Assembly: GCF_006345805.1 (NCBI RefSeq)
Contig: NW_021837025.1
Location: 186,001 to 250,000, forward strand
Direction: 5' to 3'
Length of the DNA stretch: 64,000 nucleotides
DNA from: Octopus sinensis
Lineage: Eukaryota
Every line of letters starts with the position of its first letter. Positions within the stretch are counted from its first letter, which is position 1. Below, in pieces: positions 23,871 to 60,150 of the stretch. A program made the translations under genes and the position numbers. The notes under the pieces are model-generated. The model was not told where the DNA came from. It made no database searches and saw only the letters and a program-made list of their open reading frames with translations.

Positions 23871-24625
23871 TTATTCTGCCATCTCGACATCTTGTGTGTG
23901 TTCCCTCTCAACATATGGCACATGGGCAGGGACCAGCGGCAAGATGACATCCTACATAATATGGACTACACCACCGACCTCATCCTCAATCAAGCACTCA
24001 TATTCATCCCTCACATCGTCGTCGGTCACATCACCCCCCACCACAGCAGAACTGATTAATCGACTTATCTCCTACTTTGTACAATTTAATGACAACATTC
24101 TGTTTTTCAACCGCCTCCTGACTATCAAGCAGAATATTCTCGGCATCCTCAATCGACAGCAACTAAAATGATGTGGAGAATATGCCTGGTTGAGGTGCTT
24201 CAGTGCCTCGTTTCCTTGTTTTAGACAATCGAAAATTCGAGTTTCCATTTGCTTGTTTTCTATTTGTCTGGTCTTTATTTTTAAATAAAATTTAAATACA
24301 AGTTGTTCGATGTTGTCCAAGTTTTGTTCTGTCCTCTCCGCAGTCTTCTCGGTTTGCTTCTTCTTCCTGAGAATGAGTTTGGCACGTCTGTGAGGATTTA
24401 TGTATTTGACTACTCTCTATTTCCCGATTGGAGTAGTTTTATTGCGAGATTTCTGTCTTTTTGAATTGCACTGATCAGTCTCCGCTGGTGGCATTTAAGC
24501 TGATCTCTTTGATTCTTCAATTGCTATTTGGGGCTGTTATTTGAATGCTTTATTGATACCAATATTATTTTGTCCGTTTCGGTGATTCTAGTGACTGCTT
24601 TCTTATGGGAAAAGACACCACCCAT
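23871..24625 (-). CDS. CHMP6: ESCRT-III subunit CHMP6/Vps20
   Basis: MGGVFSHKKAVTRITETDKIIL|QLKNQRDQLK, RAKLILRKKK, LKQGNEALKHLNQ|LLSIEDAENILLDSQEAVEKQ, LPLVP. Introns of 23-36 nt, including GC-AG at 24163-24185. Confidence 0.9.
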
Positions 24626-29215: not shown

Positions 29216-30329
29216 ATGAAATAAATCAATTTGAAAAGCTTAACTTTTAATGCTTTTTGACGGAAGATTCCTTTTCTATTTCGGGTACATTAATTAAAGC
29301 CATCGCGAATAAAATATCGACAATATTGAATTATCGAACATCTTTTAAAGCTTTAAACGGTTGGTTAGACAGATATTAGAAACATATGAAATGATGGATA
29401 AGTTAGAAAATCTTTTGAGACACTCCAAAAATATCATGAGTTTGGATTTCAACTTAGAAAGGATTTAAAAAATAAGAAAAGTTTGAAATTGACTCATTAT
29501 TTCAAAAAAATGTTTTAAAAAGAATATTTATTAATTAATCAAATGAAAAATTCAATAGTTTGAACCAGACCCCTGTTTGGAAGGGCACCCCTGCTTTCTG
29601 GGGCATTCTGGTACCCCACCCCGGGGTTAGACTGTATTTAGTTCTTTCAAAATTTGATTATGTTTTCTCAATTTTTTAAATTTCACTTGTAAATTATCTG
29701 CAGAGGCTTTATCTGCAGAGGCTCTTCCTTACAAACCTTTCGAAAGCAATTTGTTTTATAAGCCGTTCAATGGAACTGGGCTTTGCAGCCTTCTGCTGTA
29801 GGTTCGAAATCTTTTGCAGATTTGATGGAGGCAGATATTATCCCAGGTTTCACAAGCATTATCAGTGGAGGTTTCGACCTATTGCTTGAGGGACACCGAT
29901 TGGTAACAGTTTAGAAATAGAGTTTATTTGGTTATGATTTGCAAGCCCTCGACGTCCACTTAAGAAGTTTGCTAGTCATAGTTTGAGGTTCGGGTAGATA
30001 TTTGAGGTAAACATTTTACAGATGAGGTTTTTACCGGGGACTAAATCAAACGCCTTTTGTATGTCTACTGAGCAAAGAGTTGTTTCTTCTGGATAGGCAG
30101 GGTTTTAAAGCCTTTGTGGATAAAATTAGAGAGTTTTTTTCAGAAATGAAGATATAAATAGTCTTTTCTTAAAACCATGTTGGAACCGTACAAGTGCGAG
30201 AGACGGTTAAATCAGTTTTAATATTAGTTTCTCCAGATTTTCCCTGAGAATTCGTCCAAACAGCTCGGCTGTCAATTGCTAGTTGTCGTAGATGAGTTGA
30301 CTTGTGTAAGAGTTCACCTCCTTATTTCT

Positions 30330-30955
30330 TAAGCATTCCAAGATATCCTCCTGGAGACTCTCAGTCTCCGCCATTATTCACAATATACTTGAAACCCGCT
30401 ATGAGGGAACTGAGACTATTATACCAAGGAAAAATAGTGATTTATGGCAATGATGTCGACCTAATCTCTGAAGAGAAAGCACTTCTGGAAAATGTACTAA
30501 AAAAAGCAGCAGATATACTTGAAAAATGTTTCTTCACTGTCAACAGGAAAAAACAGAATGGATAGGACAAATGAACATCCACTCAAAAAAAATTGAGAAA
30601 TATTAAGAACTCGGCTCTCTATTAGGAAACAGTGAAGATATCATACGAAGAAATACCCTGGCAAACGCGGCATTACACAGGCTGAAAAACCTATGGCTAA
30701 AACGAAAAGGAAATAGCATAAATAAGATAATGCTATACGACACATTTATCAAACCAATCCTCCTATACAACTCTATGACCTGGGGCACAATAAGAGAAGA
30801 ATTGGAAAAGCTTAACTCGTTTCGCAGGAATCATCTAAGAAACATAACTGGAATGTCCTGGCCATCCAAAATCCTGCAGAGTTGACAGGACAATAAGTGT
30901 GACTGTACCCAAATAAGTCGCGAAATCATTAGCTCTCGTTGGAGACTTTTTGGAA
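30330..30955 (+). mobile_element. RTE-like RT remnant
   Basis: PGDSQSPPLFTIYL, YGNDVDL, KLGSLLG, IKPILLYNSMTWG, SRWRLFG with frameshifts. Confidence 0.75.
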
Positions 30956-31732: not shown

Positions 31733-33271
31733 TTAAAACAAGGAGATAGTCTCACTAGCCGAAGGACCGAGACTGATCCACCTGACTAGAAATAAGAAAA
31801 AAGTGTGACCTCTGAGTCTGCTTAGTGTCTCAACACACCTCACATACTCCTGGGCGTTCACAGGCAAGTCCTCAAAGCGGGATATTGCCCGAATGTCACA
31901 ACACCACCCCGGTAGTTTGTGGTAGACAACCTCGACTTTGGCCAACTCCTCACAATTGGCTGAACCAATCACTCCCAAACCAAACCAGGGACATGGTCGA
32001 TAGTGAAGCCATCCAGAAGGTAGTGACTGCCCACGTATAGCTCCTCCAGGTCACTGAGGACATCCAATTTGGTAAGGGCAATACTAAACACACTAAAATA
32101 GAGAAAATACAAACTAAATCCATTCACGATGGCCGAATAGCGCATAACATGACAGTCCAGCCACCCACAACGTCTCACTCGGCCTGTGGTCACTCCAATC
32201 TCCTTCCCCTTCTGCTGCAACATCTCTGCTGCCTCCTAAGCCAGTCACTACTCCAACTACATCACTCAGTTCGGTGGGGAAGGGCCCACTACCAACTCTC
32301 GTCGAATATGCCTTGAACACCCCGATTATGTCACCCACGTGTTTCGGAGGTATCCCCAACCCCGTGAAAACACCACCAACCGCACAGTTCGATGACGTCA
32401 CATTGGGATAGGTCCCTTATATATATAATCGATAATCCACCAAAATCGATATCCAGCATGAATCCGTTGGCCCCTTCGACCAGGATGGATTTGCCTTCCT
32501 CGATTTTGCGATTCAAAAAAATGGAGGTGTCGGTGACTGTGGCTTTGAAGTAGTCCCTGTACTCCTGTCCAGTCACCCAGGGGGGGCCAACCTTGTAGGT
32601 CTCCAGTTCGGCCTCCACGTCGACGGACAGAGAGGGGAACATTGCCTTCTGCACATCCACCAGACTGACAAATCTGCTCGATTAACACACACATTCACTT
32701 TTCTTCAAAAATAGCCCAATCGCCAACCAAATCAGCCAGTTTGAGGACAGTTCGATTGACTTTGGAGGAATAGCAGGGACCAATCCCCTTCTTAGTTGTG
32801 CCTATTCTGTCCTATAAAGACTGGACTGTACTTTTTGTGGTCCCTCAACTGCTCTTGTGCTGCGTCCACGTCCTTAAACATTTGGAATACTTTTATATGA
32901 ATTGTACTCTCACCAATGGGGGCTCTGTTTGAGATTATTAGACGACTTCTCAGGTCTTTGAGTCCTTTCATTTCGGCCTGTTCGATTTCGTGTTTGAGGT
33001 CGGTGAGGGACACGACGACTCCATTTCCTGGGGATGTGACTAGTGGGGTACCGATGACTCCCACGACTGACTGGTGACACACGCCGGAAGGGAGGAGGTG
33101 GAAGAAATATGTTTGTCCACCAAAGACCACGGTATGGCCGGCATTGGAGCCTCCCTGACATCTGCAGACGTAGTCGTAGGTCGGGGAGAGTTGGTCCACC
33201 ATCTTACCCTTCCCCTCGTCTCCCCATTGGCCACCTAATATTATATCCACACGTCCTGGTCTAGAATTCAT
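31733..33271 (-). CDS. ADSS: Adenylosuccinate synthetase, 428 aa, ten introns of 24-27 nt
   Basis: [81 protein letters not shown]. The 1539-nt span minus 252 intron nt gives 429 codons. Confidence 0.97.
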
Positions 33272-39064: not shown

Positions 39065-41230
39065 CAGTGGTTCTCAACGGTGGGCGATTCGCCCCCAGGG
39101 GCGATTTTTTCTGCCAGGGGGGCGATGGCTGATTGCTAATATTTGAAAAATTAAAATCTTATGTTAGAAGTCGATAATCTTTGAAAAAATAAAAATATAT
39201 AATCGAGTCTAATAATATTTATAATATAATGATATTTGGTACTTTTGTCGAAGTGGTCGCAGTTTTTTTAAGAAGATAATTAAAATTAATTAATTTTTTT
39301 AGTGAAAAATAGATATTTAATTTATAACCCTCTATCAATAATTTAAATGGTTATTAAAATTATTTAAAAATTTATTTAACCAATTTAGTCATTTTAGTAC
39401 GCGGCATCCAAATTCCAGGACTGTAGAAGGAATTTATTTTGAAAGGATATCCACATTTTGCAGAAAATGCACTGCATCCTCCTTACTTATTGGGAGCTGT
39501 CGGAATATAAATTAGTAAAAAATTTAATAATATTTTAAATTATTGATAGAGCGACTTAAATAAATATAATATATTCCACCTCAAAAATTATTAGATTTTT
39601 TAAAAGGCCTAAAAAACTGCGACCACTTCGACAAAAGTACCGATATTTTTATTATATTTTATTTAATTTCTAAGCGTGATTTCTAGTTATCTTTATGGGT
39701 CGTGTTCAAAAAAAGTCAGAATGTATAAGATGAATATATTTTTTTGGATTTATTAAAGATCCTCAAGATCCTAATAAACCACTTTGTCTTCAATGTGGTA
39801 CAATTTTTTCGAATGAGGCAATGAAACCGTCTCGTTTGATTGAACATTTAAAGCGAAAACATCATAATTCAATTGGAAAAAAGCCAGACTTTTTTCTAGA
39901 ATTAAAAAAGAATTTTGAAAATAAAAACACCTTACCGTCAATCTTTAATAAAAATATATCTCAAAATGTCTCTGGATTATCTTATTCATATAAAGTTGCA
40001 GAGATAATCGCAAAAACTGGTTGCATTATTATTTTAATTTATAGGTAATGCCCGTTCGATTGCAGAAAATGTCATCCGTCCTTGTTTAAATTTATTTATA
40101 AACGATATCTTACAAAAAGATTCTTCAAATATTATGAAGACTATCCATTAAGCAACGACACTATACGAAGAAGAATTGATGAAATTTCTAATGAAATTGA
40201 ACAATCTTTAATTTTATTTCTCAGAAAACGCAAGTTTTCAGTCCAACATGACGAATCAGTTGTCGTTGATAATCAGTCAATTTTGATGGCATATGTAAGG
40301 TATTACTTTTTATAAATACTTTTTATAAAGATATTTCGATGATGATTCTATTTTGCAAGAAGAGTTATTATTTGCAAAATCTTTGTGATATTATTTGATG
40401 CAATTGTTGATTTTTTAAGATTACAAGAAGAATTTAAATTGTTTGATTCCTGCAAAATTCATAGAAAAAATATTTTTAATTTAAATTGGATTTTAAAAAA
40501 TTAAATGAAGTTTCATTGGCTTTACAAGGAGATTATGTTAATTTAATTGATTGCAAACGAATTATAAATACATTCATTGAAAAAATTCAATTTTACAAAT
40601 TTAATTTAAGTAATAGAAAATTTGGAAAATTCGATTTTTATGACCACACTTTTGATGACAACGATCTGAAAATTTATGAATTTCATTTAGAATCTTTGGA
40701 ACAAGATTTGAAAAAAAGATTTGAAGATTTAATTAATTTAAACTTTTCTGATTGGATGATTAATCCTTGGTTTCCCATTAATTATGATTCTGATGATGAA
40801 TGTCAAGAAGAATTAATAGAACTAAAAAACGCCGAAGAACTGAAATTAAAAATGAAAACCTGACACAATTCTGGGGAGAAAAATCTATAAAAATGAAATT
40901 CCCGAAATTATGGGAAAAAATGATGCCAATAATATTATGTTTTCCTACGTTATACTGCGTAGAGAGAGGATTCAGCACTCTGAATAGTATGATCGGAAAA
41001 AAAAGAAACAAACTAAATATAAAAGAAAGAGGCGACATTAGAATTACACTTACGAAAAGAAGTACAAATTTTGAAAAACTTGTCAATCTTCATCAACCAC
41101 AAGGATCTCATTAAAACTCTTATTTTTTAAATAAAAATTTTTACTAATGAAATAAGGGGGCGATATAAAAATTGGAGGGACGAAAAAAATTCCAAGGGGG
41201 CGATACAAAAATAAAGGTTGAGAACCACTG
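39065..41230 (+). mobile_element. Buster-type hAT transposon with decayed, internally deleted transposase
   Basis: TIR CAGTGGTTCTCAAC at both ends; TSD CTCTAAAA (39057-39064 and 41231-41238); empty site visible in unit 2. Motifs PLCLQC..SNEAMKPSRLIEHLKRKH, LSNDTIRRRI, FSVQHDES, YCVERGFS, DIRITLT. Confidence 0.93.
39238..39641. mobile_element. Merlin deletion derivative (404 bp) nested in the hAT element
   Basis: Same TIRs and subterminal sequence as 18481-19852; flanked by a GATATTT direct repeat (7 bp). Confidence 0.93.
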
Positions 41231-41376: not shown

Positions 41377-42311
41377 ATGAAGAGGTTGTCAATGGTTGTT
41401 GTAAAATATAATTAGCGGAGTGGACTTGGCCTACACAGTATTCAAAGCAGCCATCAACGAACGTCTAGCATACCCCCACCCAGTCTATATTCTCCACGGC
41501 TTCCAAAGCAGCAGGACTCGCTGGTCCCCGGTGGCCGAGGAACTGTCCAGGAAGGGGATAGAGGTACAACTCTTTATACAAGACAAGACAATCACCGTGG
41601 AAGCACGGAATCACGGAGACAGTCCCTACGTCGACGACCACAGCCACCAAAACATGATTAAGGACGTGGAGAGACTTCGAATAAAGTTGGGTCACTCCAA
41701 AATAAGCATTGTGGGCCACAGCATGGGAGGGATCACCGGAATGTTCTACGCCCTCGAATATGTAGTCCCCCACCCACACCGAAGGGTCCCTCCTTGGCCG
41801 ATTTGGTGGTTGTGGACATCACTTTGGCCCCCCGTGGTGGAGGGAGTCCCCACTTCGAGACCATTTCCCGAATTCGGATACCAGAAGACCCCACAATGAC
41901 CCGGGAACAAGTCGTCGAGCACATTCTAGCCAACACAGAATCACTCATTTCTGTTTTCGTTCTTTCTTATACTCAGAGAAGTGCTCTTGAGAATTTTTTG
42001 AGTGCCAAACTGGTTTTTAAGGAGGGGAAATATCAGTTTACTTTCAATGAAATGCTGGCCAGAAGAGGACACCAAATTGGGAGTATTCCTCCAGGAGTGT
42101 GTCCCAAAAAAGTGCTGTTTGTAGGGGGAGGTGACTCCACGTACATGACGTTGGTCCACTTTTGTCACGTGCAGTTCCGAGGGATTGGAAATGACGCAAA
42201 AAACACTTTCCGAACCAGCAAGTGGTGTACATTGAGAATTGTGGACATTTGGTTTTCGAGGACGATTTTGAGGCATTTACTAAGACTGTGGTCGACTTTT
42301 TGGTTGGGTGA
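41377..42311 (+). CDS. ABHD11: ABHD11-like alpha/beta hydrolase, copy 1
   Basis: ILHGF, VEARNHGDSP, GHSMGG nucleophile elbow, VVVDI, VLFVGGGDS, CGH. Introns of 23-31 nt. Confidence 0.82.
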
Positions 42312-42462
42312 CTAATTTGGTTTATTTGTTGTTTAATAAAGAGTGTTTACTAAGACTGTGGCATTTACTAAGACTGTGGTCGGGCTCTTACTGTGGGGAT
42401 GTGACTCTAAAAGACACGTGCAAAGGGTCCTTGCTGAAGGGCGTACCCTTTTGGATAGAATT

Positions 42463-43115
42463 ATTATTATTTAACCCAAGAATCACCAACAGTTAATTAG
42501 GGTAATTAATTAGGTGATTCCAACAATCCTCAAAATCTTTCTCAGCTTTTCCCGATGTTGGACTCTGGACCCAACGCAAGTGCGGGACGGGCGGGGAGCA
42601 GTTTTTGTGAGGAATTGGAGTGGGGTGATGTGCTTTAGAACCCAAGCGGCGCAGGCATAGCCAATTGTTGGTTCGATGAATTGTTTGTAGAGAGTGCCGA
42701 GAGCCGCGAACGGTGTCTTTAGTCCACCAAAAATCGATTTGATTAGTCCAATCTTTCTTTGACTGGATCCGATGGCCTTCTCTAAATGGGCAGTAAAACA
42801 CATGTGGGTGTCAAAAGTGACCCCCAGAATTTTAGGGTTCTTCGTGAATGGAATCTTTTCGTTGTCCAGAAAAAGATCAACAGTAAGGCTTCCAAGTCTC
42901 TTGTTCGACGTAAATAGGGTAGTGGACGATTTTTCGGGGGAGATGTTCATCCTGTTTTGATATAGCCAAGTTCGAATTTCTAATAAAAGATCTTGTGTTC
43001 TTTTGGAAGCTTTCGAGAGGTCTTGGTCACGTGATTTAATGAGTAGGTCGTCAGCGTAGGCGAGAATGATTGAGTCTTCCATTTCAGGGTTAGGGATGTC
43101 GGATAGGTATAAATT
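42463..43115 (-). mobile_element. 5-prime-truncated LINE (Jockey/I-like) insertion
   Basis: RT end (YADDL, EKSSTTLF, PKILGVTFD), (TAA)n-like tail and 5-bp GAATT duplication (42458-42462 and 43116-43120). Absent from the homologous site in unit 1. Confidence 0.88.
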
Positions 43116-43254: not shown

Positions 43255-44187
43255 ATGAATAGGTTGTCAATGGTTGCGGTAAAATATAATTAGCGGAGTC
43301 GACTTGGCCTACACAGTATTCAAAGCAGCCATCAACGAACGTCAAGCATACCCCCACCCAGTCTATATTCTCCACGGATTCCAAAGCAGCAGGACTCGCT
43401 GGTACCCGGTGGCCGAGGAACTGTCCAGGAAGGGCATAGAGGTACAACTCTTTATACAAGACAAGACAATCACCGTGGAAGCACGAAATCACGGAGACAG
43501 TCCCTACGTCGACGACCACAGCCACCAAAACATGATTAAGGACGTGGAGAGACTTCGAATAAAGTTGGGTCACTCCAAAATAAGCATTGTGGGCCACAGC
43601 ATGGGAGGGATCACCGGAATGTTCTACGCCCTCGAATATGTAGTCCCCCACCCACACCGAAGGGTCCCTCCTTGGCCGATTTGGTGGTTGTGGACATCAC
43701 TTTGGCCCCCCGTGTTGGAAGGAGTCCCTACTTCGAGACCATTTCCCAAATTCGGATACCAGAAGACCCCACAATGACCCGGGAACAAGTCGTCGAGCAC
43801 ATTCTAGCCAACACAGAATCACTCATTCCTGTTTTCGTTCTTTTTATACTCAGAGAAGTGCTCTTGAGAATTTTTTGAGTGATACACTGGTTTTTAAGGA
43901 GGGGAAATATCAGTTTACTTTCAATGAAATGCTGATTAGACGGAGACCCCAAATGGAGAGTATTTCTCCAGGAGTGTGTTCCAAAAAAGTGCTGTTTGTG
44001 GGGGGAGGTGACTCCACGTTAATGACGTTGGTCCACTTTTGTCACGTGCAGTTCCGAGGGATTGGAAATGACGAAAAAACACTTTCCGAACCAGCAAGTG
44101 GTGTACATTGAGAAATGTGGACATTTGGTTTTCGAGGACGATTTTGAGGCATTTACTAAAACTGTGGTCGACTTTTTGGTTGGGTGA
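43255..44187 (+). CDS. ABHD11: ABHD11-like alpha/beta hydrolase, copy 2
   Basis: Same exon structure and catalytic motifs as copy 1; one intron is 23 nt versus 24 nt in copy 1. Confidence 0.82.
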
Positions 44188-44257: not shown

Positions 44258-45281
44258 TTATGCCTCGATTTCACAGAAGGATAAATAGTCCCCGTATTGG
44301 TAGCTTTCGAGCATCACTTTGGCGACCATTGAGGTGAGATTGGCACATTTGAACATGTTTTTGGAGTGTGGCCAGAGTCTGTCAGAACCGACTTTGGCGC
44401 AGTGATGTTTGATGTTGTTGGTGGAGAGAGCAAAGACGTCGAAATACCTCGACATTTCTGCAAATAAGTGAAGGAGTGTTACCAGGCATGTTTATCCCAC
44501 TGTGGATAGTAATTTGCTGTATAGTCTTGGGAACCCCCAATGTGTAGTTAATCTTGCCATAAAAATTCCCCTGAGTCACCACACACGTAGCCATGTTTAA
44601 GTCATGTCCATATGTCGTGTAACTGTAGTTTCCATACATGCTTGTCATTTGTATTGTGTTCGGCGGTGGTGTCGTCGTCGGCGTAGTAGTCGTGGTTGTT
44701 GTAGTGGTAGTAGGGGTCGTAGTAGTAGTAGGGGTGGTAGTAGTAGGAGTGGTAGTAGGGGTGGTCGGGGGTGAGTAGTTTGGGTCGACGTATTTGCAGA
44801 CAGCGGGGAGTCTCGCAAAGCAAATGTAGTCGAACCACTTGCCTGTAAAAATGTCCATTCCAGCACAGTTTTCGAACTGATTTCTGCCACTTGGTTCATT
44901 TTGATACCAATTAGAATATGTCTGAGTATTAATATATAAATAGACCAATCCATTCCCATTGCTGTCCTTGAATATCCCCTCATTGTTGATATCATCGTAG
45001 TCCAACCAAACTGCCACAGACCTGGTCTTTATGTTTCGAAGGATGGCTAAAATAGTCCCCAAACCCTCACATATCAGCGAGTCCTTTTCTGCCGAACTTC
45101 CAACAGTCACCAACTCCCTCCCGACTGTTGTGCAGAGAGTCCTCGCCCCCGAGTGGGTGACGTAGTCCTTCGCGTAGATTTGATAACAAAATCCATTCGC
45201 ACACGAAGTTTGGGGGGTGGAAATTATGCAGATTCCACAGACCTTCCTGGCCAGTAATACAAACAGCACAAATTCGAACAT
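44258..45281 (-). CDS. Secreted C-type lectin, Thr/Pro mucin-like linker and F-type-lectin-like domain (paralog 2)
   Basis: Signal peptide; CYQI, ARTLC, VWLD, YSNW..NEPSG, ENCAGM, KWFDYIC..LPAVC; (PTTT)n linker at about 44660-44775; LSFCEIE. Three introns at the same positions as paralog 1. Confidence 0.85.
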
Positions 45282-45589
45282 CACTCTCCGCCTGGCAGAG
45301 GGTATTTAAGGCTGCGGATATTGGTCTTCCAGATGGCATTGGGAGTATAAATAAACTCATTAATTGACAATTAATATTATTCTTGTTGTGCTTGTTTGAC
45401 AGACAACACATGTCTATTACTTTGGAATGTCACTTTTATTATTTTTGGTAACAGGGATATTTAGAAAAGTCATGTGATTGGGGGATAATTGATTATATAT
45501 ATTTAATTATATACAAAATGTGAATGAAATAATATAATAATTTAACAATAAAATATACACTTTTAAAAGTCCGGTTATCGTTATTTGTC

Positions 45590-46933
45590 ATGTCACTCCG
45601 CAAACATTCCTGTTCGTCCAAAAAAAGCAAAGAAGAGTCCAATTTCTGGGACATTGGAGGATACACCCCAACCTGTCGTCGAATAACCAACGGAATAAAA
45701 TCACTCGACGACCTGAGAACATATTTGGGGGAGAGAGCCCAATTAGCCCAGAACTACGCGAAAGAACTGAACGAACTGTCCAACAAATGGAAAGGAAAAC
45801 TCTCAAAATGTAAGCAAAGCAAAGCAGCACACAGCAATCCCCATAGCGACGGCCATATTTATGATAACCTGATAGCCCAGGAATACGCCACAGCCCGACA
45901 GTTGTGGGAAGAATTGCTGGAGGAACCCACAAAAACGTGTTCAGTCCAAGTCGAGTTGGGGAGGGCACTCAATTCGAGACAGGGACAAGTAAAGAAGTGG
46001 ATAGTGGACAAACAGAGGGAGTTATTCCACAACAAGAACATGAAGGACCACCAAAGTCGATTCCAGACAGTGAGGGGGTGAGTAATGGGGTAGGCACAGA
46101 AGGAGTGGGCTGTGAGGGTCACCAATATGAGGAAGGCCAGGGAGGAGTACGACTGTGCCTGTCGGAGAGTCCACAATTTTGAATTGAAGAGGAATATAAG
46201 CACGTGTGATCAGGGAGTGGTCCAAGACAGTGTCAAACAACAGGAAAAGGCCACAAAACTAAAGAAACAGCAACAGGATGCCAAAATGGTGTATATTGAG
46301 GCCATTCGACTGGTGAATGAGCGGAGGGAGTGCTACTCGCAGGAAATGATGAGAATATTCGAGTCCTGTCAGCAGGTGGAGAAGGAGAGGATTGACTACT
46401 TCTCCAGCATTGCCCTCCTCATGGCGGATCTCCTCCACAAACATAACTGTGTGGACATGTCTGCTGTTTATTCCGCAATCCAGGGAAGACTGACGGAGGC
46501 GGACCCTGAGAGGAGTCTGAAGTACTGGTTTGATGTGAGAGGCCCCTCCTCCCCTCTGCCGGTCTTCGAGTTCCAGGAGTCGAACATCAACGAGGATGTG
46601 GAGATATTGGTGGCCAAGTCAGTCCGCCACTCCGCCCCGGCCGAGACATGTTCATACAGGCAGAAGAACAGTGTGGAGACGAATGGAGGTAAGCAAGGGA
46701 GTGAGACGTACTCCCCTGGGGAGGAACAGCCGGTGGTGGCACTGTACGACTACGAGGCGGGGGAGGGGGATGAGTTGTCCTTCCGAGCTGGTTTGTGATG
46801 GGACTGACTGGCAGGGCAGAGAATGATGCGGTTCAGTCAGGAGGACGAGAATGGGTGGGTTAAGTGTATGGATGACCAGGGACAGTATGGATTCGTCCCC
46901 TCCAAGTTCATAAGGGATCAGTTACTCCTCTAG
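45590..46933 (+). CDS. PACSIN: PACSIN/syndapin (F-BAR plus SH3)
   Basis: NFWDIGGY..T.RRI..G, ERAQL..NYAKEL.E...KW, QQVEKERIDYF, VALYDYEAGEGDELSF, ENGW, GFVPSKF. Confidence 0.9.
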
Positions 46934-47041
46934 TGATTTATTACTAACATTTATCAATCTAGTTTGCATATTTTGGTTGCTTATCAGGGTGGTTGTGATT
47001 AATTGATTAGAAATGGTTGATTATTTGGTGCATTGCCCACA

Positions 47042-47723
47042 TTATATATTAGCAGTTGTAAACATGAAGCCACAAAAGACATGAGAGCCCCACAGTGGAT
47101 GTGCCACGTATTTGCAGCAGCCGTAGTACTCCACTGCAAGGCCTGCCAGGACAACAAAATCCTCGTCCGTGTCCATCAGAATGTCCTCCCCCCTCTCCGT
47201 CAGTCCCTATGGCACATAATAGTCAATATAAACAGGCAGTCCACTAGCGGGGTCGACATAGTCAAACCAGTCATTCCCCAGCACATCCCTCAGTCCCTTG
47301 GCCCTCTCCACGAACTATTAAATAAGGAATAAGCATACATCCCGGCACAGACCAAGTCGTTCGTGGGCACTCTCCAGTGAGTAATAAACCATGTTATTGA
47401 CAGTGTGGTAGCAGACAGTGATCATCGTCACTAATCCCTGTCCTCTCAGCTCTGGGAATGCTCTCTCCAGTTCTGTCTATTGCACAGTTGGCTGTACTTT
47501 CTTTCACGTGGGAATCACTGCAGGGAGTCACGGCCAGTTCTGGGTGGAGGACTGTGGGAGTGTCGGTTGGTGAGTTGCTGGTTATAAAAGGATTGAATTT
47601 AAAGTTTTTGATTATTTTTTGTATTTTTGTGTTATTTTGGGGGAGGGTTTGTGGTATGGGTTGACTTGGAAAGGGGATTCGTGTTCGCCTTAAATGTCTA
47701 TACTTGTCACAACGTCTGAACAT
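47042..47723 (-). CDS. MMADHC: Cobalamin trafficking protein CblD
   Basis: Spliced C-terminus KFVERAKGLRDVL..DWFDYVDPASGL...DTDEDF..G..VEYYGCCKYVAHPLWGSHVFCGFMFT matches MMADHC (WADFIDPSSGL...GCCKVIRHSLWGTHV). Confidence 0.82.
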
Positions 47724-47798
47724 TAAAATGTAATATTATTTTATAATTAATAAACAATTATTTAATTATAAAAATAAATTCAAATATTATTTTGTTTC

Positions 47799-49473
47799 AT
47801 GTGTGACGACACCCAATCAGACTCAATAAAGTACATATATAAAGACCCTCAATGGACATGTCCCTGCAAGACTGACGACTACATCGAGGTCATAAAGGAC
47901 GGCACCCTCCTCGAGCGAATAGACCTCAAAAACACAAGCAAACTAATACTTGGACGACTCGAATCATCCCAAATCCGCCTCGACAACCCCTCAATTTCCC
48001 GCCATCACGCTGTAATCCAAAACTCCCCCCAAGGCTGGTTCATTTTCGACCTGGAAAGCACCCACGGCACATTCATCAACAAAAAACGCATTCCAGTCAG
48101 AATCTACGTCCCCTTCAAACCTGGCCACATTGCCAAATTCGGAACCAGTTCCCGCCTTTTTGTCCTCCACGTACACGTGGTCTCTCAGTCCCCAGGGCCT
48201 GGAAGAGGAGGTGGAGGAACCCCTTTCAATCACCCAAATAAAGCAGCAACGACTGATCCCCTCCCCCAGACTGCCCGACCCCCCGAAGGAGGAGGAATGT
48301 GAGGAGAGAGTGCCCTGTGTGTGGGGATTTGGTGAGGAGGAGTGGATTATTGGCAGGGGAGGACGCCATGGATGAGGGAGTGGACGAATCAGTCTTCATG
48401 GGGGACCCCAAGAAGACGTTGAGGGACTTTATGGAGAAGGATGGTGGAAATATGCCCTCATATCAGTTCTTTGACGGAGGGGAGGGGCAATTGGGCTGCA
48501 GATTGAGGTTTGGGGGACTGGCTGAGGAGATTGGTGTTGGACGAGGAAGTGGTGGTGGCTGAGGCTGTGTGTTGGGGGAATAAGAAGGAGTGTGTCCTCC
48601 AATGTGCTGTCGAGGCCTGTCGCCTTCTCAATGCCCGAGGACTGCTGGCCGAACAGTCAGCAGGGCGACCGAAGGCTGAGAGGAACTGGGAGGCGAATGA
48701 CTACTACGACAGTGACGAGGACACATATTTGGACAGGACGGGCACAATTGAGCGGAAGAGACTGATGAGGATGCAGAGAGCGGGTTGCCAGCCCGTCATC
48801 AACGAGAACTACCACAGTCTGGTTGTGAGTTGGGAATATTGGCAGATGGTTAAATTGGAGGAGGTTGAGGGACATATTGACAACCGGGAGTGGGAGTTGG
48901 AGAGAGCTGGTTGTTTTATGTGTGGAGTGTAGCCAATGCTGGACGGATGAGAGGGGACTGTATGATGGATGCATTGGACGTGTATATGAACACTATCAAG
49001 TCTGGTGGAGCCGATTCGAGGACGAGGGTGAGAATAAAGGCAGATCTCATCAACCTTCGGGCAGAACACCGCAAGCTGATTAGTCTGGTCAACATTGCCC
49101 GTCCTCCCGGCACTCTCCCCCTCGACCACACAGATAGACTGTCCCGGGTGGCTTGTCTGTCTCACTGGTTTAGAAGAAGACTGACAAAGTCCTGGTGGAG
49201 ACCATTCAGGCCGGCCCAGAGGAAGTCAAGCCGAAAAAAGTAGAGGACTCTTCTTGTGTGGAGCCAAAGCGGAAGGAAGTAAGGAAAGTGGTTTCTAAGC
49301 CGAAACGACTTCGAATCCTGAAGACTGCGGAAACGGTGATTGAGGAGTACCCCACCTTCTCAGCTGACCCCGACTATGCAATGTGGTTGCCTCCTTCTGG
49401 TTGGTTTGTGTGGACACTCTTAGAGGATGTGGGGGATGGCCACACACATCTCAATGAAAAGTACGGATATTGA
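47799..49473 (+). CDS. SLC4A1AP: Kanadaptin (FHA-domain protein)
   Basis: FHA (LGR, PSISRHHAVIQ, DLESTHGTFINK), DPKKTLRDF, YYDSDEDTYLDRTG, C-terminus DPDYAMWLPP..GDGHTHLNEKYGY. Confidence 0.92.
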
Positions 49474-49555
49474 CATTCTCTTTTTAACATATTTTTTTAA
49501 TTTCGGAGAAAATGACTTGGCCTAATATAAGTCCTGATTCCGATATATTTTTAAA

Positions 49556-50453
49556 ATGAGAAGAATTTGTACTGTATGGAATATAGTTAAGACTTTATTG
49601 ATATCTATAATCAGCACATTTGAGGTTGGTGGAGGGACTGTCCTGTAGATGGTCTACCTGAGCATAATCGTGATTGCCTCCTATTCGCTTTATTTCTCGC
49701 ACCAGGAATTCGGACTCCAGCTTGGATCCACTCCCGTGGTCATTTTCGCGATTGTGATGATCGGCATTCCAACGGTGGCAGCCAGTCTGAACTTGTTGGG
49801 CGTGATTGGGGTTTTGAGGGAAAACACGGTCTTGTTGGGCTATGTATTATTCCCTGTTAATTATAAGTTCTACCGAATCATGCTTTGTGTGTTTTTTGTA
49901 TTTTCTCTGATATGTGCAGTGTCGATCATTTACTTGGGAATGCCCAGTTTTCAGAACGAGGTCTACAAGTTTGGACTGAACAATATCGGAATGTACCTCA
50001 TCAACTCATACGACAGTGATCCAAATATTCAGGCAGTCGGTGACTACATCCAGCAATGGGTTCTCTGGTTAGTACATTCTAGTTCAACTGCTGCGGACTG
50101 ACCTCGATGGACGACTGGAATGCCAGTTCACTTTTCAACTGCATTTTGATTAAAAACGTCTACCACCACTGCAGTGCCCCTTTCTCTTGTTGTGCTGATT
50201 TTATAAAAAAGAAAAATTTTAATTGTGGCAGAAATGCGAGGGTAGTGACTTTTATTTATATTTTAAGATAACCAACAGACTTGCCCTGTTTTCTGAGGGA
50301 TGTGGGACTGTCATTCGAAACCTTTGTAGTAAAAATGAGATGAAAATTAGCATTTCGTTATTTATCTATCTTGTGTTTTTGGTATTGTATATGTCAGTTT
50401 TTTTAGTTCTTTTTTATAATTGGAATTTTTTTATTAAGAAGGTCAATTGTTGA
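49556..50453 (+). CDS. TspanC8-type tetraspanin
   Basis: GVIGVLRENT.LL; large loop with eight Cys (CCG..DDWN..FNC..HC..PFSCC..NCG..EGC); four TM segments after splicing. Confidence 0.82.
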
Positions 50454-50523
50454 TAAAAGGTATTAATATTAAATACTAATTTAACTTGGTTATTAATCTA
50501 AAACTTTGTTAATATATTTTAAA

Positions 50524-53471
50524 ATGTTTTCTTGTGGTGCAATATTGTTTTTGTTGTGTTTATCACATCTATCTGGTCAAAAGTGCCAAAGTTGTATCTA
50601 TAATATCCAATTTAGTATATGTCGTGACATTTGAAGGATATTTCACTCCACATTTTCTCCACAAACTGATAACTCGTCATCTCAGTCAATCACACGATTG
50701 GCATATTCTTCCACGAAACAACACAAGAACATTCACTGACTTTATACAGATATGTGTTAGTCGTTCCCACATCAATTCAAGTCCTGCTTTACCCCTCCAC
50801 AGCCAATATATCCCTTAAAAAGAATTTCTCTCCAACACTATTATCGATTATTTTCCAAACCAGCTAATTTTCCCGCCTCAATCCACAACATTGCCCAAGC
50901 ATTGGGAGCCCCCTCTATTTGGAAGACAGGGACAGGGAAGGGGGTCAAATTGGCCGTGTTCGACACTGGACTGACCGACAGACACAATTATTTTTCCCGC
51001 CAAAAAATAATCGATAATGTGGATTGGACAGACGAGGGGACCTCCAGAGACTGTGAGTGATCATTTAAACCAGCCCAGTGAACGGACATGGGACATTCAT
51101 GGCAGGGCTGATAGGGGGAGGGGAGGACTCGGTGGCCCCCCAAGTCGACCTTCTCATCATGAAGGTCTTCACCAGCAATCAAGTTGACTGTCCCCACCTC
51201 ACAAGGTCTCCAATACGGGCTGGTTCCTGGACTCCTTCAACTACGTGCTGTCCCATGGAGTGGACATAATTAACCTCAGCATTGGAGGACCTGACTTTAC
51301 CGATTTGCCCTTTGTGGATAAAGTTGTGTGGAGTAGTACAGGCAGGTTAGAGAAGTGGTGGCTGGAGGGGTCATTGTGGTGTCCGCTGCGGGAAATGACG
51401 GGCCAGTCTTTGGGAGTCACAACAGTCCGGCAGACCAGTCGGAAGTCATCAGTGTTGGCAGTATTGGATTGGATGGCCGAATCTCCTCATTTTCTTCACG
51501 TGGGATGACTCTGTGGGAACTTCCGTGGGGGATAGGTCGTACTAAGCCCGATTTGGTGACCTTTGGGGAAGGAGTGGTGGGGTTGGGGATCACCACTCCG
51601 CGGACAAGTCTAAGCGGGAGTAGTGTGTCCGCGGCTATTGTCTCGGGCAGTCTGGCTCTCCTCCGTTCCGTGATTCCTCTCAACCCCGGAAGTGCCCGAC
51701 AGATTCTGGTCGAGTCGGCTGTGTTGGGGGATGAGGGAATCACGGAACAGGGAGGTGGGAGGCTGGATCTCCTCAGTGCTGTCGAACATGCGAGAAAATA
51801 TATTCCTCGAGTCAGTCTGCATCCGTCCTACATTGATTGGAGGGATTGTTTATACATGTCTGACATATGTGGACAGTCTCTGTACGAAGGAGGACTCCCA
51901 GTCTTCATCAACGTGTCCATAATCAATGGTCTGAGTGTCACTAGTCGAATCACTTCCCCCGTAATTAAGCATAAAGGACGTGTAGCCTACGTGGGAGTAT
52001 AGTTCAGTGGGAGGACAGTTCATTCAGGTCGGGGTGGACTATTCACAGGTCATTTATCCTTATTTTGGGTATCTGGCCTTGTCCTTGTCTGCATTGCCGG
52101 GGGCTGTTTCCGGGGAGGTGGAGGGGAGTGTCGTGTTATTTGTGGACTCGTTGGGGGAGACTCAAAGAGTGGTTCTCCCCCTTCGAATATCTGTCGTGTC
52201 TCCCCCTCCTCGGAAGTAAGATTGGAGTGTTATTGGAAGTAGACGTATTCTGTGGGATCAGTACCACAGCATTGGATATCCCCACGGAATAGTCCCCTCT
52301 GATTTCCTGGGAGACGTGTCCTTTGATCGGTGGTTGTGTGCTGCTCATTTGCAGTCACGGGGACACAATTTACACTAACTTTCGGGAGTTGATTACTGCA
52401 TTGAGACAGGAGGGGTATTTTGTGGATGTTTTGAGTATTTTGTGTATTTATGGAGTAGCCACCCGGGTGACCTGTCCTTCTGTCAATCTTTCTGCATATG
52501 GTTGTGTGTTCTATTCATTGTAGGACTGTTCATGGTTGTGGACCCAGAGGACGACTTTGGTCAAGCTGAAATCACTTATATCAACGATTCTATTAAAAAT
52601 GGACTGTCTCTTTTCATTGTGGCGGATTGGTACAGTGACGTGATCCTCCAGAGACTGAGACAGCCTCCAATGTCTGGATTGGTGTGTTATTGGTAGATAT
52701 CCAATCATCGGGGGAGCCAATGTGCCTGCCTTGAATCGTCTTCTCCGTCCATTTGGGATTGCCTTTGGGTGGGGATTTATTCTTAGTTGTAGAGAGGGGG
52801 CACTATCTGGGGCATTTTTCTACAAGGGGGGCAAAGGTGGTGTGCTGTGAGTCACTTTTAGTATATATTGATGGGGGAGTGCCTATAATTCGGTTTCCTT
52901 CTGAGGGACGACTTTTTTCTGTTCCTCTTTTTGACAAAAGCAAAATGTCGAGTGATATGCGGACTGATCATTATATTGCTGGATTAGTCGAGAATGTCGG
53001 TGGGGGAGTCATTTCAGTCCTCGGGGACTCCTCCTGCCTCGACAGTGCTGGGCTGAGTTGTCTCTCAATGGCCATTTCCCTTGTCGGTCATTCTTTATCT
53101 CATCCACGCATTTCGTTGCCCGAGTTTATTCGCCCTCCACAAGTAGTCGAGTCCGAGGATGTCATTTTTGAGTGCAAAGGTGGGCATTGGTGACTTACAA
53201 GATTGTGGAGACCTTTCCCTACTTCGGGCCAATGTTCCGAAATGTGGGATCCTCACAATTCCGGCCAGGTCTGTGGAATCGAATGTCCCGTTGTGTTATT
53301 CAGTCTATTAGTAGATTCAAGGTCGCCACTAAGCCGTCGGGTTGGAATAATATTTCGTTTATTGCTGAGTCATCTGATGCACGTGAATATCACGGGAGTG
53401 TTCTGTTTGGGGTGTTCTGTGTTATTATTTGTTTATTACTTCTCATTCGTGTATGCATGCGAATGTGTTGA
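50524..53471 (+). CDS. MBTPS1: Site-1 protease (subtilisin/kexin isozyme 1)
   Basis: Signal peptide; [17 protein letters not shown] prodomain; [58 protein letters not shown]; C-terminal TM. Confidence 0.95.
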
Positions 53472-53946
53472 GGTTATTTTGCTAAATTGTGGATATTCTA
53501 CGGTGAATGTACAGTGCCTACAAATCAGGGTTGTTAAAAATCATGATTTTTATTTTAAAAATAAGATTTTTGGATTTAGACAATGCTAGATCTTTTATTA
53601 ATATTAAATAATTTTAATTTATTGTTTAAAATGCAATAAAAATGTATGGAGGATATAATAAAAGCAAAAAAATTTTACTCTCGCTTTTTGGGGCAATATG
53701 ATAAAAACGGTGCCTCAAACCGAGGTCGTACTGTACTAATTTTGTAGAAAGTCCAAGATGTGATATGAACGGATTAATACACGTGGGGAACTGGCTACAT
53801 TTTACCTTGAATAATCTTGATCAAAAATTTTAAAAATTAATTATTTTTTTCACCTACGGGTATCACCTTCAGCAGATTTAAATGAAAATGCTTTTTTACA
53901 TCAACTTGATTATTGCATAAATCTTTAATTATTTCGGGATTTAGAC

Positions 53947-56400
53947 CAGTGGTTCTCAACCTTTTTTAAGTCAGCACCCTTTTTTGACACAATTTTAAAG
54001 CTTAAAAATTTTAGCGCCCCCTTATTATCTAATTTATTTTTTCAATCATAGATTTATTTGTCAATATTTTCAACAATTGGCCGGAATTATCAGTTCCCTT
54101 ACTGGTTGAGCTGGTAACGTAGCTCTATTGCACAATGTGCTTCCTCGCGAATTTCTGTCTGTTATATGACTCATTTATATGTAATACTGCTTTTCAGCAC
54201 CCTGCACGTCACAAGACGGCATGGACTGGTCGAAGGATGAATAGCACAGGAGAATCAATCTATATATACAATCAAATTGATTATATTCTCTGTCGGATGA
54301 ACGACAAAAGCTTTTTGTTCGACTCACGCTCTTATGGAGGATCTGATCACAAAATCACGCTTTTGGAAATTGAAATGTCCAGGGCTCTTAGCACAATAAA
54401 CAGGACAAAGCTGATTGAGGTGTTACAACGCTTTTTGGATGAAGGTTCGGTTAGAGTAATTAGATTGATTCTCGCCAACACTGAACTTGAAGTAAGAATA
54501 AGAGAACACAAATCGATGAGTTTTGAAACGACACTGGGAACGCCTCAGGGAGACTTATTATCTCCATTGCTATTCGTAATATACTTGGAGTCGGCCTTAC
54601 AAGATCTAAGACCATATTACAAAGGTGAACCGAGGAAAAAATTTATGACGTGGACGTGATACCCGAAGACAAATCCTCATTAATAGAACTTCTCGAACTT
54701 GCACCGGAGCAATTAAGAAAATGGTTCCTTTATGTAAACAAAGAAAAAACTAATCTTGTGGAAGTAACAAGATAAAATGACAAAATCAATGAAAGATGGC
54801 GCAATGTACGACAACTTGGCTCTCTTCTGGGAGACAGTGAGGATATTGCAAGGATAAAAATGCTGGCATCTGCAGAAATGCACAAACTCTGGAAGAATGG
54901 CTATCATATGGATCAGCGAATGTTCAACTCCGGATAAGGCTTTACAATAGCTTTGTGAGACCCGTGTTAATGTATAACTTCTCCACTTTGGGTTGCACAA
55001 ATACGGAACTGACACGTCTTAACAGTTTCTACAGAGGACAATTGAGAAAACTGTTCAAAATGGAGTGGCCCTATAGAATATCTTGGGAGTCGTTATACAG
55101 AAAGTGTTCTACAAGGCCACTTTCCATTGACATTGCTGAATCCCGCTGGAAGCTATTTGGACACAGACTGCGAATGGACCACTCCGCACCCGCAAATACG
55201 GTGATGGAGGATTAATTCCAATGCGACAAACCACGGTTCCGGGGACGCCTTATTATTTTTTTCAGAATTAAAAAAAATTAAACATTTTAATGACTACTTG
55301 TGCCTGAAGAGAATTTGTTAGTTTCTTTATGTCAGCTGCACTATTTGACAGATTCAGTCTCAAATCTTTTCTATTCACAATTTGTTATTTATCTGTTGAA
55401 CAAGCAATAATATTGTCAAAGAATATTTCGTGTCTCCACAAATATTTTTCAACAGTTTTAGAGATTGTTAGTTCTCTTGTTTCGACTTTAAGATGTTCAA
55501 AAAAGTAGAAATTCTTCTTGAATTACATCATTTTGATTAATAAAACGTATGTAAATTAATAAAAATGCAACACTATCGGTAAATGTCGATTCATTAATTT
55601 GAATCGAAAATTTTGTTGTTCTTAAAAATGCACATAAAGTTTCTTCGATATCAGATACCATTTCATCAATTCTGGAAGAGACTGAACTATTGCTCAAAAA
55701 AATTGATGAAATTATTTGTTCAGAATCGAAATCAACCATTAAATTGGTATTATATTAAAGACTTCATGAGGTTTTCCTGATTTCTCTATCTATTGTGATA
55801 TTTTGTATGATACTAATAGGCCTTTTTCAAGTATCTTCGAATTTTTGTGAATATTTGATTAATCATAAATTTTCATAATTATATTTTAAATTAGAAAAGT
55901 AATTAATATCCGCATCAGGTTTCTCAGGATGACAAATCTTGAAATGATTTAGGATTCTTGAGAGCTTCATTCCTTCATTTGTAAAGACCTTTTTACACAT
56001 GAGACACATAGGAAATGAATTGTTATGGTCTTGGAATATCACTCCAAACTTTAGGTGTTCATTCGAATATATACGTCGATTATTTTTTATCAGACATCTA
56101 TTGTATCGTTAATATCTCTGTCGCAAGATGTAAACAAAATGTTGACATTTCGCTCAGGCCGGCCACACTTTTTTATAGAAAGATCAAAACAGAAAAAGAA
56201 CATGTTACCAAAGAACTAACTAATCCAAACGAAGTCATGTGTCTCTTCTTCTCCATTTTGCTCACCTAATTTTTGTTGTATGACTGTTGAAGATATCCGG
56301 TTCCGCAGTGATAACACGTCACTTGTTAATCCGGGTTGCATATTGGATGAAGGAACCTTCATGAAACCAAAAAAGTCAGACATCTATAAAATATTAAATG
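53947..56400 (-). mobile_element. Decayed Buster-type hAT element; one TIR seen, other end lost
   Basis: CAGTGGTTCTCAACC at 53947 preceded by ATTTAGAC. Minus-strand transposase remnants LSNSSVSSRIDEM..KFSIQINES..LLIYIRF..QEEFLL. Confidence 0.7.
54135..55250 (+). mobile_element. RTE-clade LINE remnant nested in the hAT element
   Basis: NQIDYIL, SDH, GTPQGDLLSPLLFVIYLE, QLGSLLG, RPVLMY, SRWKLFGH.LRM. Confidence 0.82.
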
Positions 56401-59689: not shown

Positions 59690-60150
59690 AATGACTGCCG
59701 AAGAACAGTGGGCTGCTTAGCATGGAATATGCAAGAGAAACTATTGAAAATAACTCAGGACAGCGTTCGGCGACTGCCTCAAGCATGTGGTCCCTCCTGA
59801 CGTCATTAAAAGCGTTCTTGCATCAAGTTTGAAAAAGAAGAAAACATTCTTTGGCTTGAAAAACAACAACTGGCGAATAGCGTGGGATAGTGCTTTGCAA
59901 GCCCCTTTAATACTGACGCCGAATTGATAAGGCAAGAACTCAATTGGGGACAACACATGAGACATTATCTTGGAATCCAGGCGTCTGAATACGTTCCCAA
60001 CTTCGATCGGGCGTAATTCGCCATCACTCTTGCGAAGGGCCATAAGATTGGCAGAAAAGAGGAGATCCTTTGCTACTGCAGGTAAAGAGCCAGTAATGAT
60101 CCGAGTACAAAGCCGATTGAACATAATAGAGCACTCCCTGAATCAACTGT
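59690..60150 (-). mobile_element. CRE-clade RT fragment
   Basis: FSANLMALRKSDGELRPIEVGNVFRRL, YQFGV..G, FKLDARNAFN. Confidence 0.8.

Follow-up and report, generated by a model that had tools for sequence, protein, structure and literature searches.

Genes in a 64-kilobase (kb) window of the Octopus sinensis assembly GCF_006345805.1 (contig NW_021837025.1, forward-strand positions 186,001 to 250,000; 39.6% GC) carry a strand asymmetry that reverses along the gene, most clearly at positions 45590 to 53471 of the window, where PACSIN-like, MMADHC, FHA-domain, tetraspanin and MBTPS1 genes lie close together. In the longer genes, a short and strong 5′ zone of about 300 to 500 nucleotides (nt), rich in C and A on the sense strand, precedes a G/T plateau that reaches the stop codon. 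Four things were established directly: that the asymmetry exists, that it follows the orientation of the gene, that silent sites and introns carry it, and how it runs along the gene. Gene-anchored asymmetry of this kind is a known class; the present case is genuine and, in the focal genes, exceptionally striking, within the limits set by 19 genes, approximate gene models and sequence as the only evidence. We read it as a two-regime, gene-anchored, nucleotide-level asymmetry that is probably linked to transcription, a C/A zone at the 5′ end giving way to a G/T body, and give this reading a probability of about 0.6.

Skew reversal in the focal genes and across the window

Skew was profiled in 200-nt windows of the top strand from 44 to 55 kb. 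Because the null standard deviation is about 0.1 at roughly 100 G+C per window, the swings in GC skew, which ranges from -0.44 to +0.56 across 45.6 to 49 kb, are not noise; AT skew runs opposite to GC skew, so that C+A-rich and G+T-rich DNA alternate. Six counts made by hand on 60-nt lines in the original prediction, which had described this alternation from the letters, proved exact (19 C and 12 G in the line at 45841, 27 G and 8 C at 46801, 25 C and 9 G at 47161, 28 G and 9 C at 47521, 23 C and 6 G at 47941, and 30 G and 5 C at 48481).

Focusing on the individual genes, the PACSIN-like gene (plus strand, FCH and SH3 domains) begins with a C/A-rich zone at 45590 to 45900 in which GC skew is weak and AT skew strong (+0.35 to +0.45), and its body and 3′ end (45901 to 46933) are G-rich on the sense strand, including two G-rich introns of about 24 to 30 nt, GTGAGGGGGTGAGTAATGGGGTAG and GTTTGTGATGGGACTGACTGGCAG. 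The change point lies 311 nt from the ATG, with skew of -0.13 before it and +0.24 after. MMADHC, on the minus strand (Pfam MMADHC, 3.7e-24), has a 5′ zone at 47541 to 47723 that is strongly C/A-rich on the sense strand (GC skew -0.59) and hence G/T-rich on the top strand; past the change point, 183 nt from the ATG, its body and 3′ end (47042 to 47540) are G-rich on the sense strand and C-rich on the top strand (sense skew +0.17; rho of G versus C with position 0.235, p = 2e-5). The FHA-domain gene (SLC4A1AP/kanadaptin-like, plus strand; FHA, 2e-16) switches 486 nt from its ATG, from a C/A-rich zone at 47799 to 48284 (GC skew -0.33) with a C-rich first intron to a G-rich body at 48285 to 49473 (GC skew +0.30, peaking at +0.56 in 200-nt windows) whose introns are G/T-rich. 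In MBTPS1 (site-1 protease, plus strand), the C-rich 5′ zone at 50619 to 50920 has a GC skew of -0.45, with windows down to -0.39 to -0.52, and its exact first exon is uncertain; the change point falls 302 nt from the ATG, the body at 50921 to 53471 stays G/T-rich for more than 2 kb, and every intron past about 0.28 of the gene's length is G/T-rich. The change-point permutation test gave p = 0.005 for each of these four genes. The tetraspanin gene between them (49649 to 50271, plus strand; Pfam Tetraspanin) showed no significant lengthwise gradient (rho 0.021, p = 0.74), and its two 100-bp ends differed in an end-to-end test (+0.45, p = 0.014).

The AT-rich spacers of the focal interval had also been described as having a G-rich left flank and a C-rich right flank on the top strand, and recomputation confirmed this for both. 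Flank GC skews are +0.32 (left) and -0.25 (right) at the convergent, tail-to-tail spacer at 46934 to 47041 (108 nt, 31% GC) and +0.26 and -0.34 at the divergent, head-to-head spacer at 47724 to 47798 (75 nt, 7% GC), a presumed bidirectional promoter. Among all annotated spacers the left flank was G-rich in only five of nine and the right flank C-rich in six of nine, the focal genes being the extreme cases of the pattern in the window. When low-GC "spacers" were scanned without annotation, the signal was weak (flank skews averaged +0.04 and -0.05), since transposon remnants rather than intergenic spacers make up many of the AT-rich stretches. A rule by which the sense strand runs from 5′ C to 3′ G is symmetric under reverse complementation, and it therefore gives every spacer a G-rich left and a C-rich right flank, be its neighbours tandem, convergent or divergent; since agreement among spacer types follows automatically, it adds no independent evidence for a process centred on the spacers. 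The proposed 1- to 3-kb period is no more than the gene spacing.

Gradients along the sense strand, computed gene by gene together with the change-point permutation tests for 19 non-transposon genes, extended the polarity beyond the focal interval. The G-versus-C gradient was positive in 15 of these (individually significant in 7) and the keto (G+T) gradient in 16 (11 significant); pooled over all sites, GC skew was -0.08 to -0.11 in the first 300 nt, +0.1 to +0.25 beyond 700 nt, and +0.08 in the 3′ third of genes. The same polarity had been suggested for ADSS (31733 to 33271, minus strand), GK, CAPZA, ABHD11, MBTPS1 and CHMP6, and the gradients bear this out for the first five, while CHMP6 stays outside the statistics and can be judged by its flank skews only. 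DEF8 and the FERM gene, for which a weak pattern had been noted, are both flat (rho -0.007 and +0.005), as is an open reading frame (ORF) for a reverse transcriptase (RT) of the long interspersed nuclear element (LINE) type that served as a control (rho -0.03). Housekeeping-type genes carry the pattern more than the lectin, tetraspanin and FERM genes do, which is no more than suggestive of an amplitude that may scale with germ-line expression. The CHMP6/Snf7-like ORF (24075 to 24416, minus strand), whose gene-finder score was too low for the statistics, has top-strand flank skews of -0.33 on its 3′ side and +0.08 on its 5′ side, the expected polarity.

Silent sites, introns and the type of base exchange

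Comparing the first ~400 nt of genes (450 nt for introns) with the remainder revealed a shift in keto skew that grows as coding constraint falls: 0.06 at codon positions 1 and 2 (-0.07 versus -0.01), 0.25 at position 3 (-0.17 versus +0.09, p = 3e-24), 0.24 at four-fold degenerate sites (-0.22 versus +0.02, p = 1e-10) and 0.32 in intron cores. This upholds the earlier claim that the skew does not arise at the level of the protein. For GC skew alone, four-fold sites went from -0.19 to -0.01 (p = 5e-4; -0.21 in the first 300 nt) and introns from -0.24 within 450 nt to +0.30 beyond it (p = 5e-11); in Pfam-supported genes, where each of the 45 introns is frame-obligate, intron GC skew went from -0.25 to +0.37 (p = 2e-8). 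Sense-strand introns beyond 450 nt have more G than C (+0.30 to +0.37) and more T than A (AT skew -0.26 to -0.28), and intron skew tracks that of the flanking exons (rho 0.39, p = 5e-4). The two ADSS introns that had been singled out read by eye as reported: intron 1, gtaccccactagtcacatccccag (33051 to 33028, minus strand), has 11 C and 3 G, and a late intron numbered 9 in the original prediction, gtttggtttgggagtgattggttcag (31985 to 31960, minus strand), has 11 G and 1 C. With one ABHD11 duplicate removed, the pattern persisted in the 13 genes outside the focal interval at position 3 (p = 6e-9), at four-fold sites (2e-4) and in introns (1e-5).

These results leave very little room for amino-acid composition, chance or gene-sized circles or amplicons, which we regard as scarcely tenable. 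Their case is that GC skew at positions 1 and 2 shifts slightly too (+0.03 to +0.10, p = 6e-3) and that one gene owes a reversed skew to a poly-Thr/Pro linker. The shift at silent sites and in introns is nevertheless four- to five-fold that of positions 1 and 2, which are not significant outside the focal genes, and the permutation p of 0.005 in four focal genes argues against chance. A search of 45300 to 53700 for direct repeats or junction motifs at gene flanks yielded just short AT-rich or compositional matches, so amplicons and circles, one of the candidates put forward earlier, lack both the flanking direct repeats and the length-scaled mid-gene switch expected of them. The silent-site, repeat and intron results already contradict this group of explanations, and the loss of skew at four-fold or intronic sites, or its reduction to amino-acid composition, which had been named as fatal to the original prediction, did not occur in the window, where the signal persists at both kinds of site.

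The exchange of bases involves A and T as well as G and C. AT skew along the gene goes from +0.18 through -0.09 to -0.20 at position 3 and from -0.05 to -0.46 in introns. At four-fold sites the first 300 nt have base frequencies of G.22, C.34, A.29 and T.16, as against G.26-.33, C.23-.30, A.19-.24 and T.20-.28 later in the gene; the change is a transition-type exchange, C for T and A for G on the sense strand. With its peak in introns and its A/T component, the asymmetry points to strand-biased transitions. The observed/expected ratio of CpG (0.63-0.71) matches that of GpC (0.62-0.64), so decay of methylated CpG is not the driver.

Selection on the transcript or on transcription would offer another route to the same composition, through an unstructured C/A-rich start of the messenger RNA (mRNA), pacing of RNA polymerase II by a C-rich start and C-poor end under limiting cytidine triphosphate (CTP; PMC3315797), or G-rich 3′ ends that assist termination through R-loops. 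C+A sequence lacks self-complementarity on chemical grounds, spacers of only 70 to 350 nt would make control of read-through matter, and an adaptive hypothesis is one of two put forward for fungi (PMC3315797). We nonetheless consider selection improbable here. The effect peaks in introns, which are absent from mRNA, and the G/T state is a 2-kb plateau rather than a 3′-terminal feature; limitation of CTP does not predict an exchange of A for T. G-run, G-quadruplex and R-loop motifs showed no excess over local composition in gene bodies (z = 1.5), and duplex energies between the 5′ and 3′ parts of mRNAs were as in shuffled sequences, with no complementarity beyond composition (z -1.6 to +2.2).

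Geometry along the gene, precedents and cause

Position-3 keto skew in the first 400 nt is -0.20 to -0.31, and in genes of at least 1300 nt, of which there are seven, it runs from -0.31 over the first 400 nt to +0.12 both in the middle and over the last 400 nt. Change points fall at 281 to 486 nt in the four longest significant genes, which span 1.3 to 2.6 kb, and show no scaling with the length of the gene (rho -0.19). Outside coding sequence GC skew is +0.02 both in the 100 nt before the start and in the 100 nt past the stop, leaving the AT-rich spacers unskewed. Likelihoods over 8425 silent sites improved by 73.5 units for a fixed step at 475 nt, 69.8 for a step scaled to gene length, 69.6 for a linear gradient and 56.7 for a three-parameter model symmetric about the spacers. 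Whether the switch sits at a fixed distance or scales with length, a check proposed with the original prediction, is thus answered modestly in favour of a fixed distance (73.5 versus 69.8), and we do not claim the matter settled.

The same comparison weighs on a symmetric process centred on the spacers and indifferent to gene orientation, candidates for which are replication origins in nearly all spacers, the leading strand being rich in C and A, or breaks and resection at every spacer. Such a process would account for the polarity symmetric under reverse complementation, G left and C right, at tandem, convergent and divergent focal spacers, for an all-site GC skew of about -0.09 on the outward-running strand at 5′ and 3′ gene ends alike, and for introns that are somewhat more G/T-rich in the last 400 nt than in the middle (+0.49 versus +0.23, n = 150), a hint of a further 3′ rise. 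Its likelihood, however, is 17 log units below that of the step anchored at the 5′ end; in long genes the middle matches the 3′ end, with a skew 2.6 times as strong in the 5′ zone, the switch keeps its place at 281 to 486 nt in genes of 1.3 to 2.6 kb, and the polarity is seen at only five to six of nine spacers. It is also the reverse of the classical G/T-rich leading strand, and eukaryotic replication skews are small and spread over many kb. We give this process small odds. The two forms in which it had been suggested, origins in almost every spacer and resection of double-strand breaks at every spacer, predict symmetry about the spacers or a length-scaled mid-gene switch and fit the geometry poorly, since long genes show a 5′ zone and then a plateau.

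The skew jumps at bacterial origins and in human skew N-domains resemble those of this window in that combined GC and TA skew changes sign abruptly along the chromosome. They differ in that the period here is the gene spacing, the spacer polarity is opposite to that of a G/T-rich leading strand, and the shape is asymmetric relative to the orientation of the genes; the orientation-independent, mid-unit switch expected of origins is not what the change points and the symmetric model show. Periodic skew flips should accordingly not be taken as replication origins without caution.

The closest precedent lies in fungi. McLean and Tirosh (PMC3315797) found that in most unicellular fungi genes begin with a C bias on the coding strand and acquire a G bias toward the 3′ end, four-fold sites included; the pattern is attributed there to the phases of transcription, with phase-specific mutation and repair or selection as candidate causes. 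The window shares the 5′ C bias and 3′ G bias, their presence at four-fold sites and a slight amino-acid shift, and a three-regime shape of ramp, plateau and ramp is plausible here as well; in the fungal shuffle test of 100-bp ends, 8 of 19 genes were significant here versus 33% in Candida albicans. The differences are nonetheless clear. AT skew in fungi is flat and positive, whereas here it reverses at position 3; fungal skew reaches promoters and untranslated regions (UTRs), mostly with its maximum at the 5′ UTR, whereas here the flanking spacers have none (transcription start sites, TSSs, being unmapped); and silent and replacement sites are affected to similar magnitudes in fungi, whereas silent sites are clearly more affected here (PMC3315797). 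The window moreover comes from an animal with introns of about 25 nt, and it is these introns that carry the strongest signal. Of the four candidates listed with the original prediction, the last, a transcription-linked asymmetry that reverses along the gene, is the best fit, and this work, which it did not cite, is its published precedent.

An excess of C over G at the TSS is known from plants and fungi (2005, PMC555766) and, as cited in PMC3315797, from invertebrates. The focal genes likewise have an excess of C on the sense strand near the gene start, reaching -0.45 in MBTPS1 and -0.59 in MMADHC; the TSS signal, however, is a pyrimidine-rich peak within 100 bp on either side (PMC555766), and the zone here is C+A-rich, extends 300 to 500 nt inside the coding region, as measured from the ATG.

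The body of the gene recalls another asymmetry. The non-template strand of metazoan genes and introns reportedly carries a transcription-associated excess of G+T, as is said to have been described by Touchon et al. in 2004 and Green et al. in 2003, and in mammals this excess is greatest near the 5′ end. Introns beyond ~400 nt conform to it, with G over C (+0.30), T over A (-0.26) and a plateau along the gene; the metazoan asymmetry, however, keeps one sign over the whole transcript and is maximal at the 5′ end, where the first 400 nt are reversed here.

On the transcription-linked reading, the first regime is an enrichment of C and A on the sense strand over ~300 to 500 nt downstream of the start, and the second, from there to the stop, is the conventional transcription-associated G+T excess of the non-template strand. 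Strand-biased transitions would lower C and raise T, and lower A and raise G, on the sense strand; in the gene body, C-to-T and A-to-G changes may build up on the exposed non-template strand, while the opposite balance would hold in the zone of initiation and early elongation, possibly under a distinct repair or mutation regime such as has been proposed for fungi. Because genes measure 0.7 to 2.6 kb and spacers 70 to 350 nt, the two regimes tile the DNA as a square wave of C/A followed by G/T. We infer both the mutational, rather than selected, origin and the role of transcription as the cause.

Several observations weigh against this reading. The fixed step beats the scaled step or the linear gradient only marginally (over the scaled step in 141 of 200 gene bootstraps), and GC skew at four-fold sites of gene bodies merely returns to about zero, being clearly positive in introns only. 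There is little or no gradient in DEF8, the FERM gene, a zinc-finger coiled-coil gene and a putative M16 peptidase, and none lengthwise in the tetraspanin gene; one lectin gene is significantly reversed, owing to a long Thr/Pro linker encoded by ACN and CCN codons. The sample, ~19 genes in 64 kb, is small. The link to transcription is drawn from geometry and precedent, and sequence alone cannot tell mutation bias and weak selection on nucleotides apart. The sign of the 5′ zone is opposite to the classical non-template G+T excess, so a single transcription-coupled process cannot explain both regimes.

That last point gives some appeal to separate causes, in which ordinary transcription-associated mutagenesis shapes the body and promoter-centred single-strand exposure of the template strand shapes the 5′ zone, through 5′-to-3′ resection from meiotic breaks in a nucleosome-free, AT-rich promoter or through strong promoter-proximal antisense transcription. 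The zone is comparable in length, at 300 to 500 nt, to yeast resection tracts, and to the right of a break the bottom strand would stay single-stranded, such that C-to-T and A-to-G changes there would leave a C/A-rich top strand. The 5′ zone outweighs the plateau (-0.31 versus +0.12), which suggests a distinct process, and both divergent genes that flank the 75-nt spacer have one. The skew, however, stops short of the spacer itself (+0.02 in the 100 nt upstream), the same sign at the TSS of plants and fungi comes without such a cause demonstrated (PMC555766), and promoters in the window are too few to compare tandem with divergent ones. Separate causes of this kind strike us as unlikely, and more so in the specific form in which the ~400-nt C/A zone would be a promoter-centred record of germ-line template-strand exposure, by meiotic break resection or intense antisense transcription, laid over ordinary G/T enrichment. 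Were that form true, raw sequence would map promoters and the landscape of breaks or antisense transcription gene by gene in an ultra-compact animal genome, and the long-unexplained C>G skew at the start sites of plants, fungi and invertebrates would gain a mechanistic handle.

Whatever its cause, the class of gene-anchored 5′ C/3′ G asymmetry is already known, and what is new is the lineage and the transition-type A/T component. Reversal of skew within genes has been documented mainly in unicellular fungi (PMC3315797), and an animal lineage in which it is visible by eye would extend the phenomenon past them. A literature search returned no report of nuclear strand skew in dicyemids, the likely source of this DNA as set out below; its matches all deal with mitochondrial genomes, and skew is not mentioned in the papers on the Dicyema genome and on short introns. 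A genome of thousands of short, intron-rich genes would let mutation be told cleanly from coding constraint, and skew would serve in practice as a cheap cue to orientation and start sites for annotating compact genomes.

Genome context, gene models and neighbouring elements

Introns across the window are GT..AG, mostly 22 to 28 nt, with weak GT..YAG signals (for example 46070 to 46099, 46791 to 46814, and 33051 to 33028 on the minus strand). Introns this short are reported among animals only in myxobolid cnidarians (myxozoans) and Dicyema japonicum (PMC13644364), whose genome, at 36.7% GC, contains many LINEs and 6.2 introns per gene (PMC6736024). The ~25-nt introns together with proteins of bilaterian type suggest that the source lineage is likely a dicyemid. 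Base composition falls into three tiers, exons at ~47% GC, intron cores at ~38-40% and spacers at ~25-30% (7-31% across spacers), and GC jumps from 25% to 44% within 100 nt at the start codon. The whole bidirectional promoter between MMADHC and the FHA-domain gene appears to fit into ~75 nt; an imperfect palindrome lies at this spacer, as an inverted repeat at 47719 to 47750 and 47762 to 47793.

Gene models came from our own small dynamic-programming gene finder and are approximate. Some introns are divisible by three and stop-free, such as a 24-nt ADSS intron, so an ORF-based model reads through them, as happened with the in-frame introns of ADSS; the N-terminus of CAPZA was also mis-modelled, and the last exon of MBTPS1 was missed. 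That exon, encoding the transmembrane segment, probably lies in an ORF that extends to 53471, the model ending at 53193. Pfam agreed with the gene names of the original prediction for PACSIN (FCH and SH3), MMADHC, the SLC4A1AP-like FHA gene, MBTPS1, GK (FGGY kinase), CAPZA, ABHD and FERM, and further supported the tetraspanin and a C-type lectin. ADSS was confirmed against PDB by end-to-end alignment with the mouse and human ADSS structures. The nearest database proteins are distant for PACSIN (best match 26% identity) and are those of protostomes for ADSS (52-56%); the window's own proteins were not found in the protein collection searched.

Degraded remnants of retrotransposons and hAT-like elements form the long AT-rich stretches. 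The LINE-type RT ORF (826 amino acids, 4522 to 7031, plus strand), which has no 5′-to-3′ skew gradient, makes up much of the gene-free AT-rich DNA together with decayed RT fragments at 13969 to 14816 (minus), 30296 to 30882 (plus), 54123 to 55212 (plus) and 59744 to 60142 (minus). Two of the long AT-rich stretches hold ORF fragments that resemble BED-zinc-finger or hAT-type transposases, at 39734 to 41111 (plus) and 55500 to 56108 (minus); judged from their translations, these include QCGTIFSNEAMKPSRLIEHLKRKHH and a C-terminal dimerisation-like piece. A predicted lysine-rich protein of no obvious family at 348 to 2056 (plus) contains three near-identical repeats of ~50 residues (KKDIKTDQVQKIGPEKNLEN..SQP..TP.SSKNVK).

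Two duplications complete the inventory. Two paralogous C-type-lectin genes, at 17040 to 17935 (plus) and 44258 to 45281 (minus), have a common C-terminal domain, and the second, with its Thr/Pro linker, has the only significantly reversed gradient in the window. ABHD11-like genes form a tandem duplication at 41377 to 42474 and 43255 to 44187 (both plus). The differences between the two copies cannot be polarised, so their use for the direction of substitutions was dropped. Their 5′ exons and introns are near-identical, an RT fragment (42510 to 43082, minus) lies between them, and the upstream copy seems to have decayed at its 3′ end.

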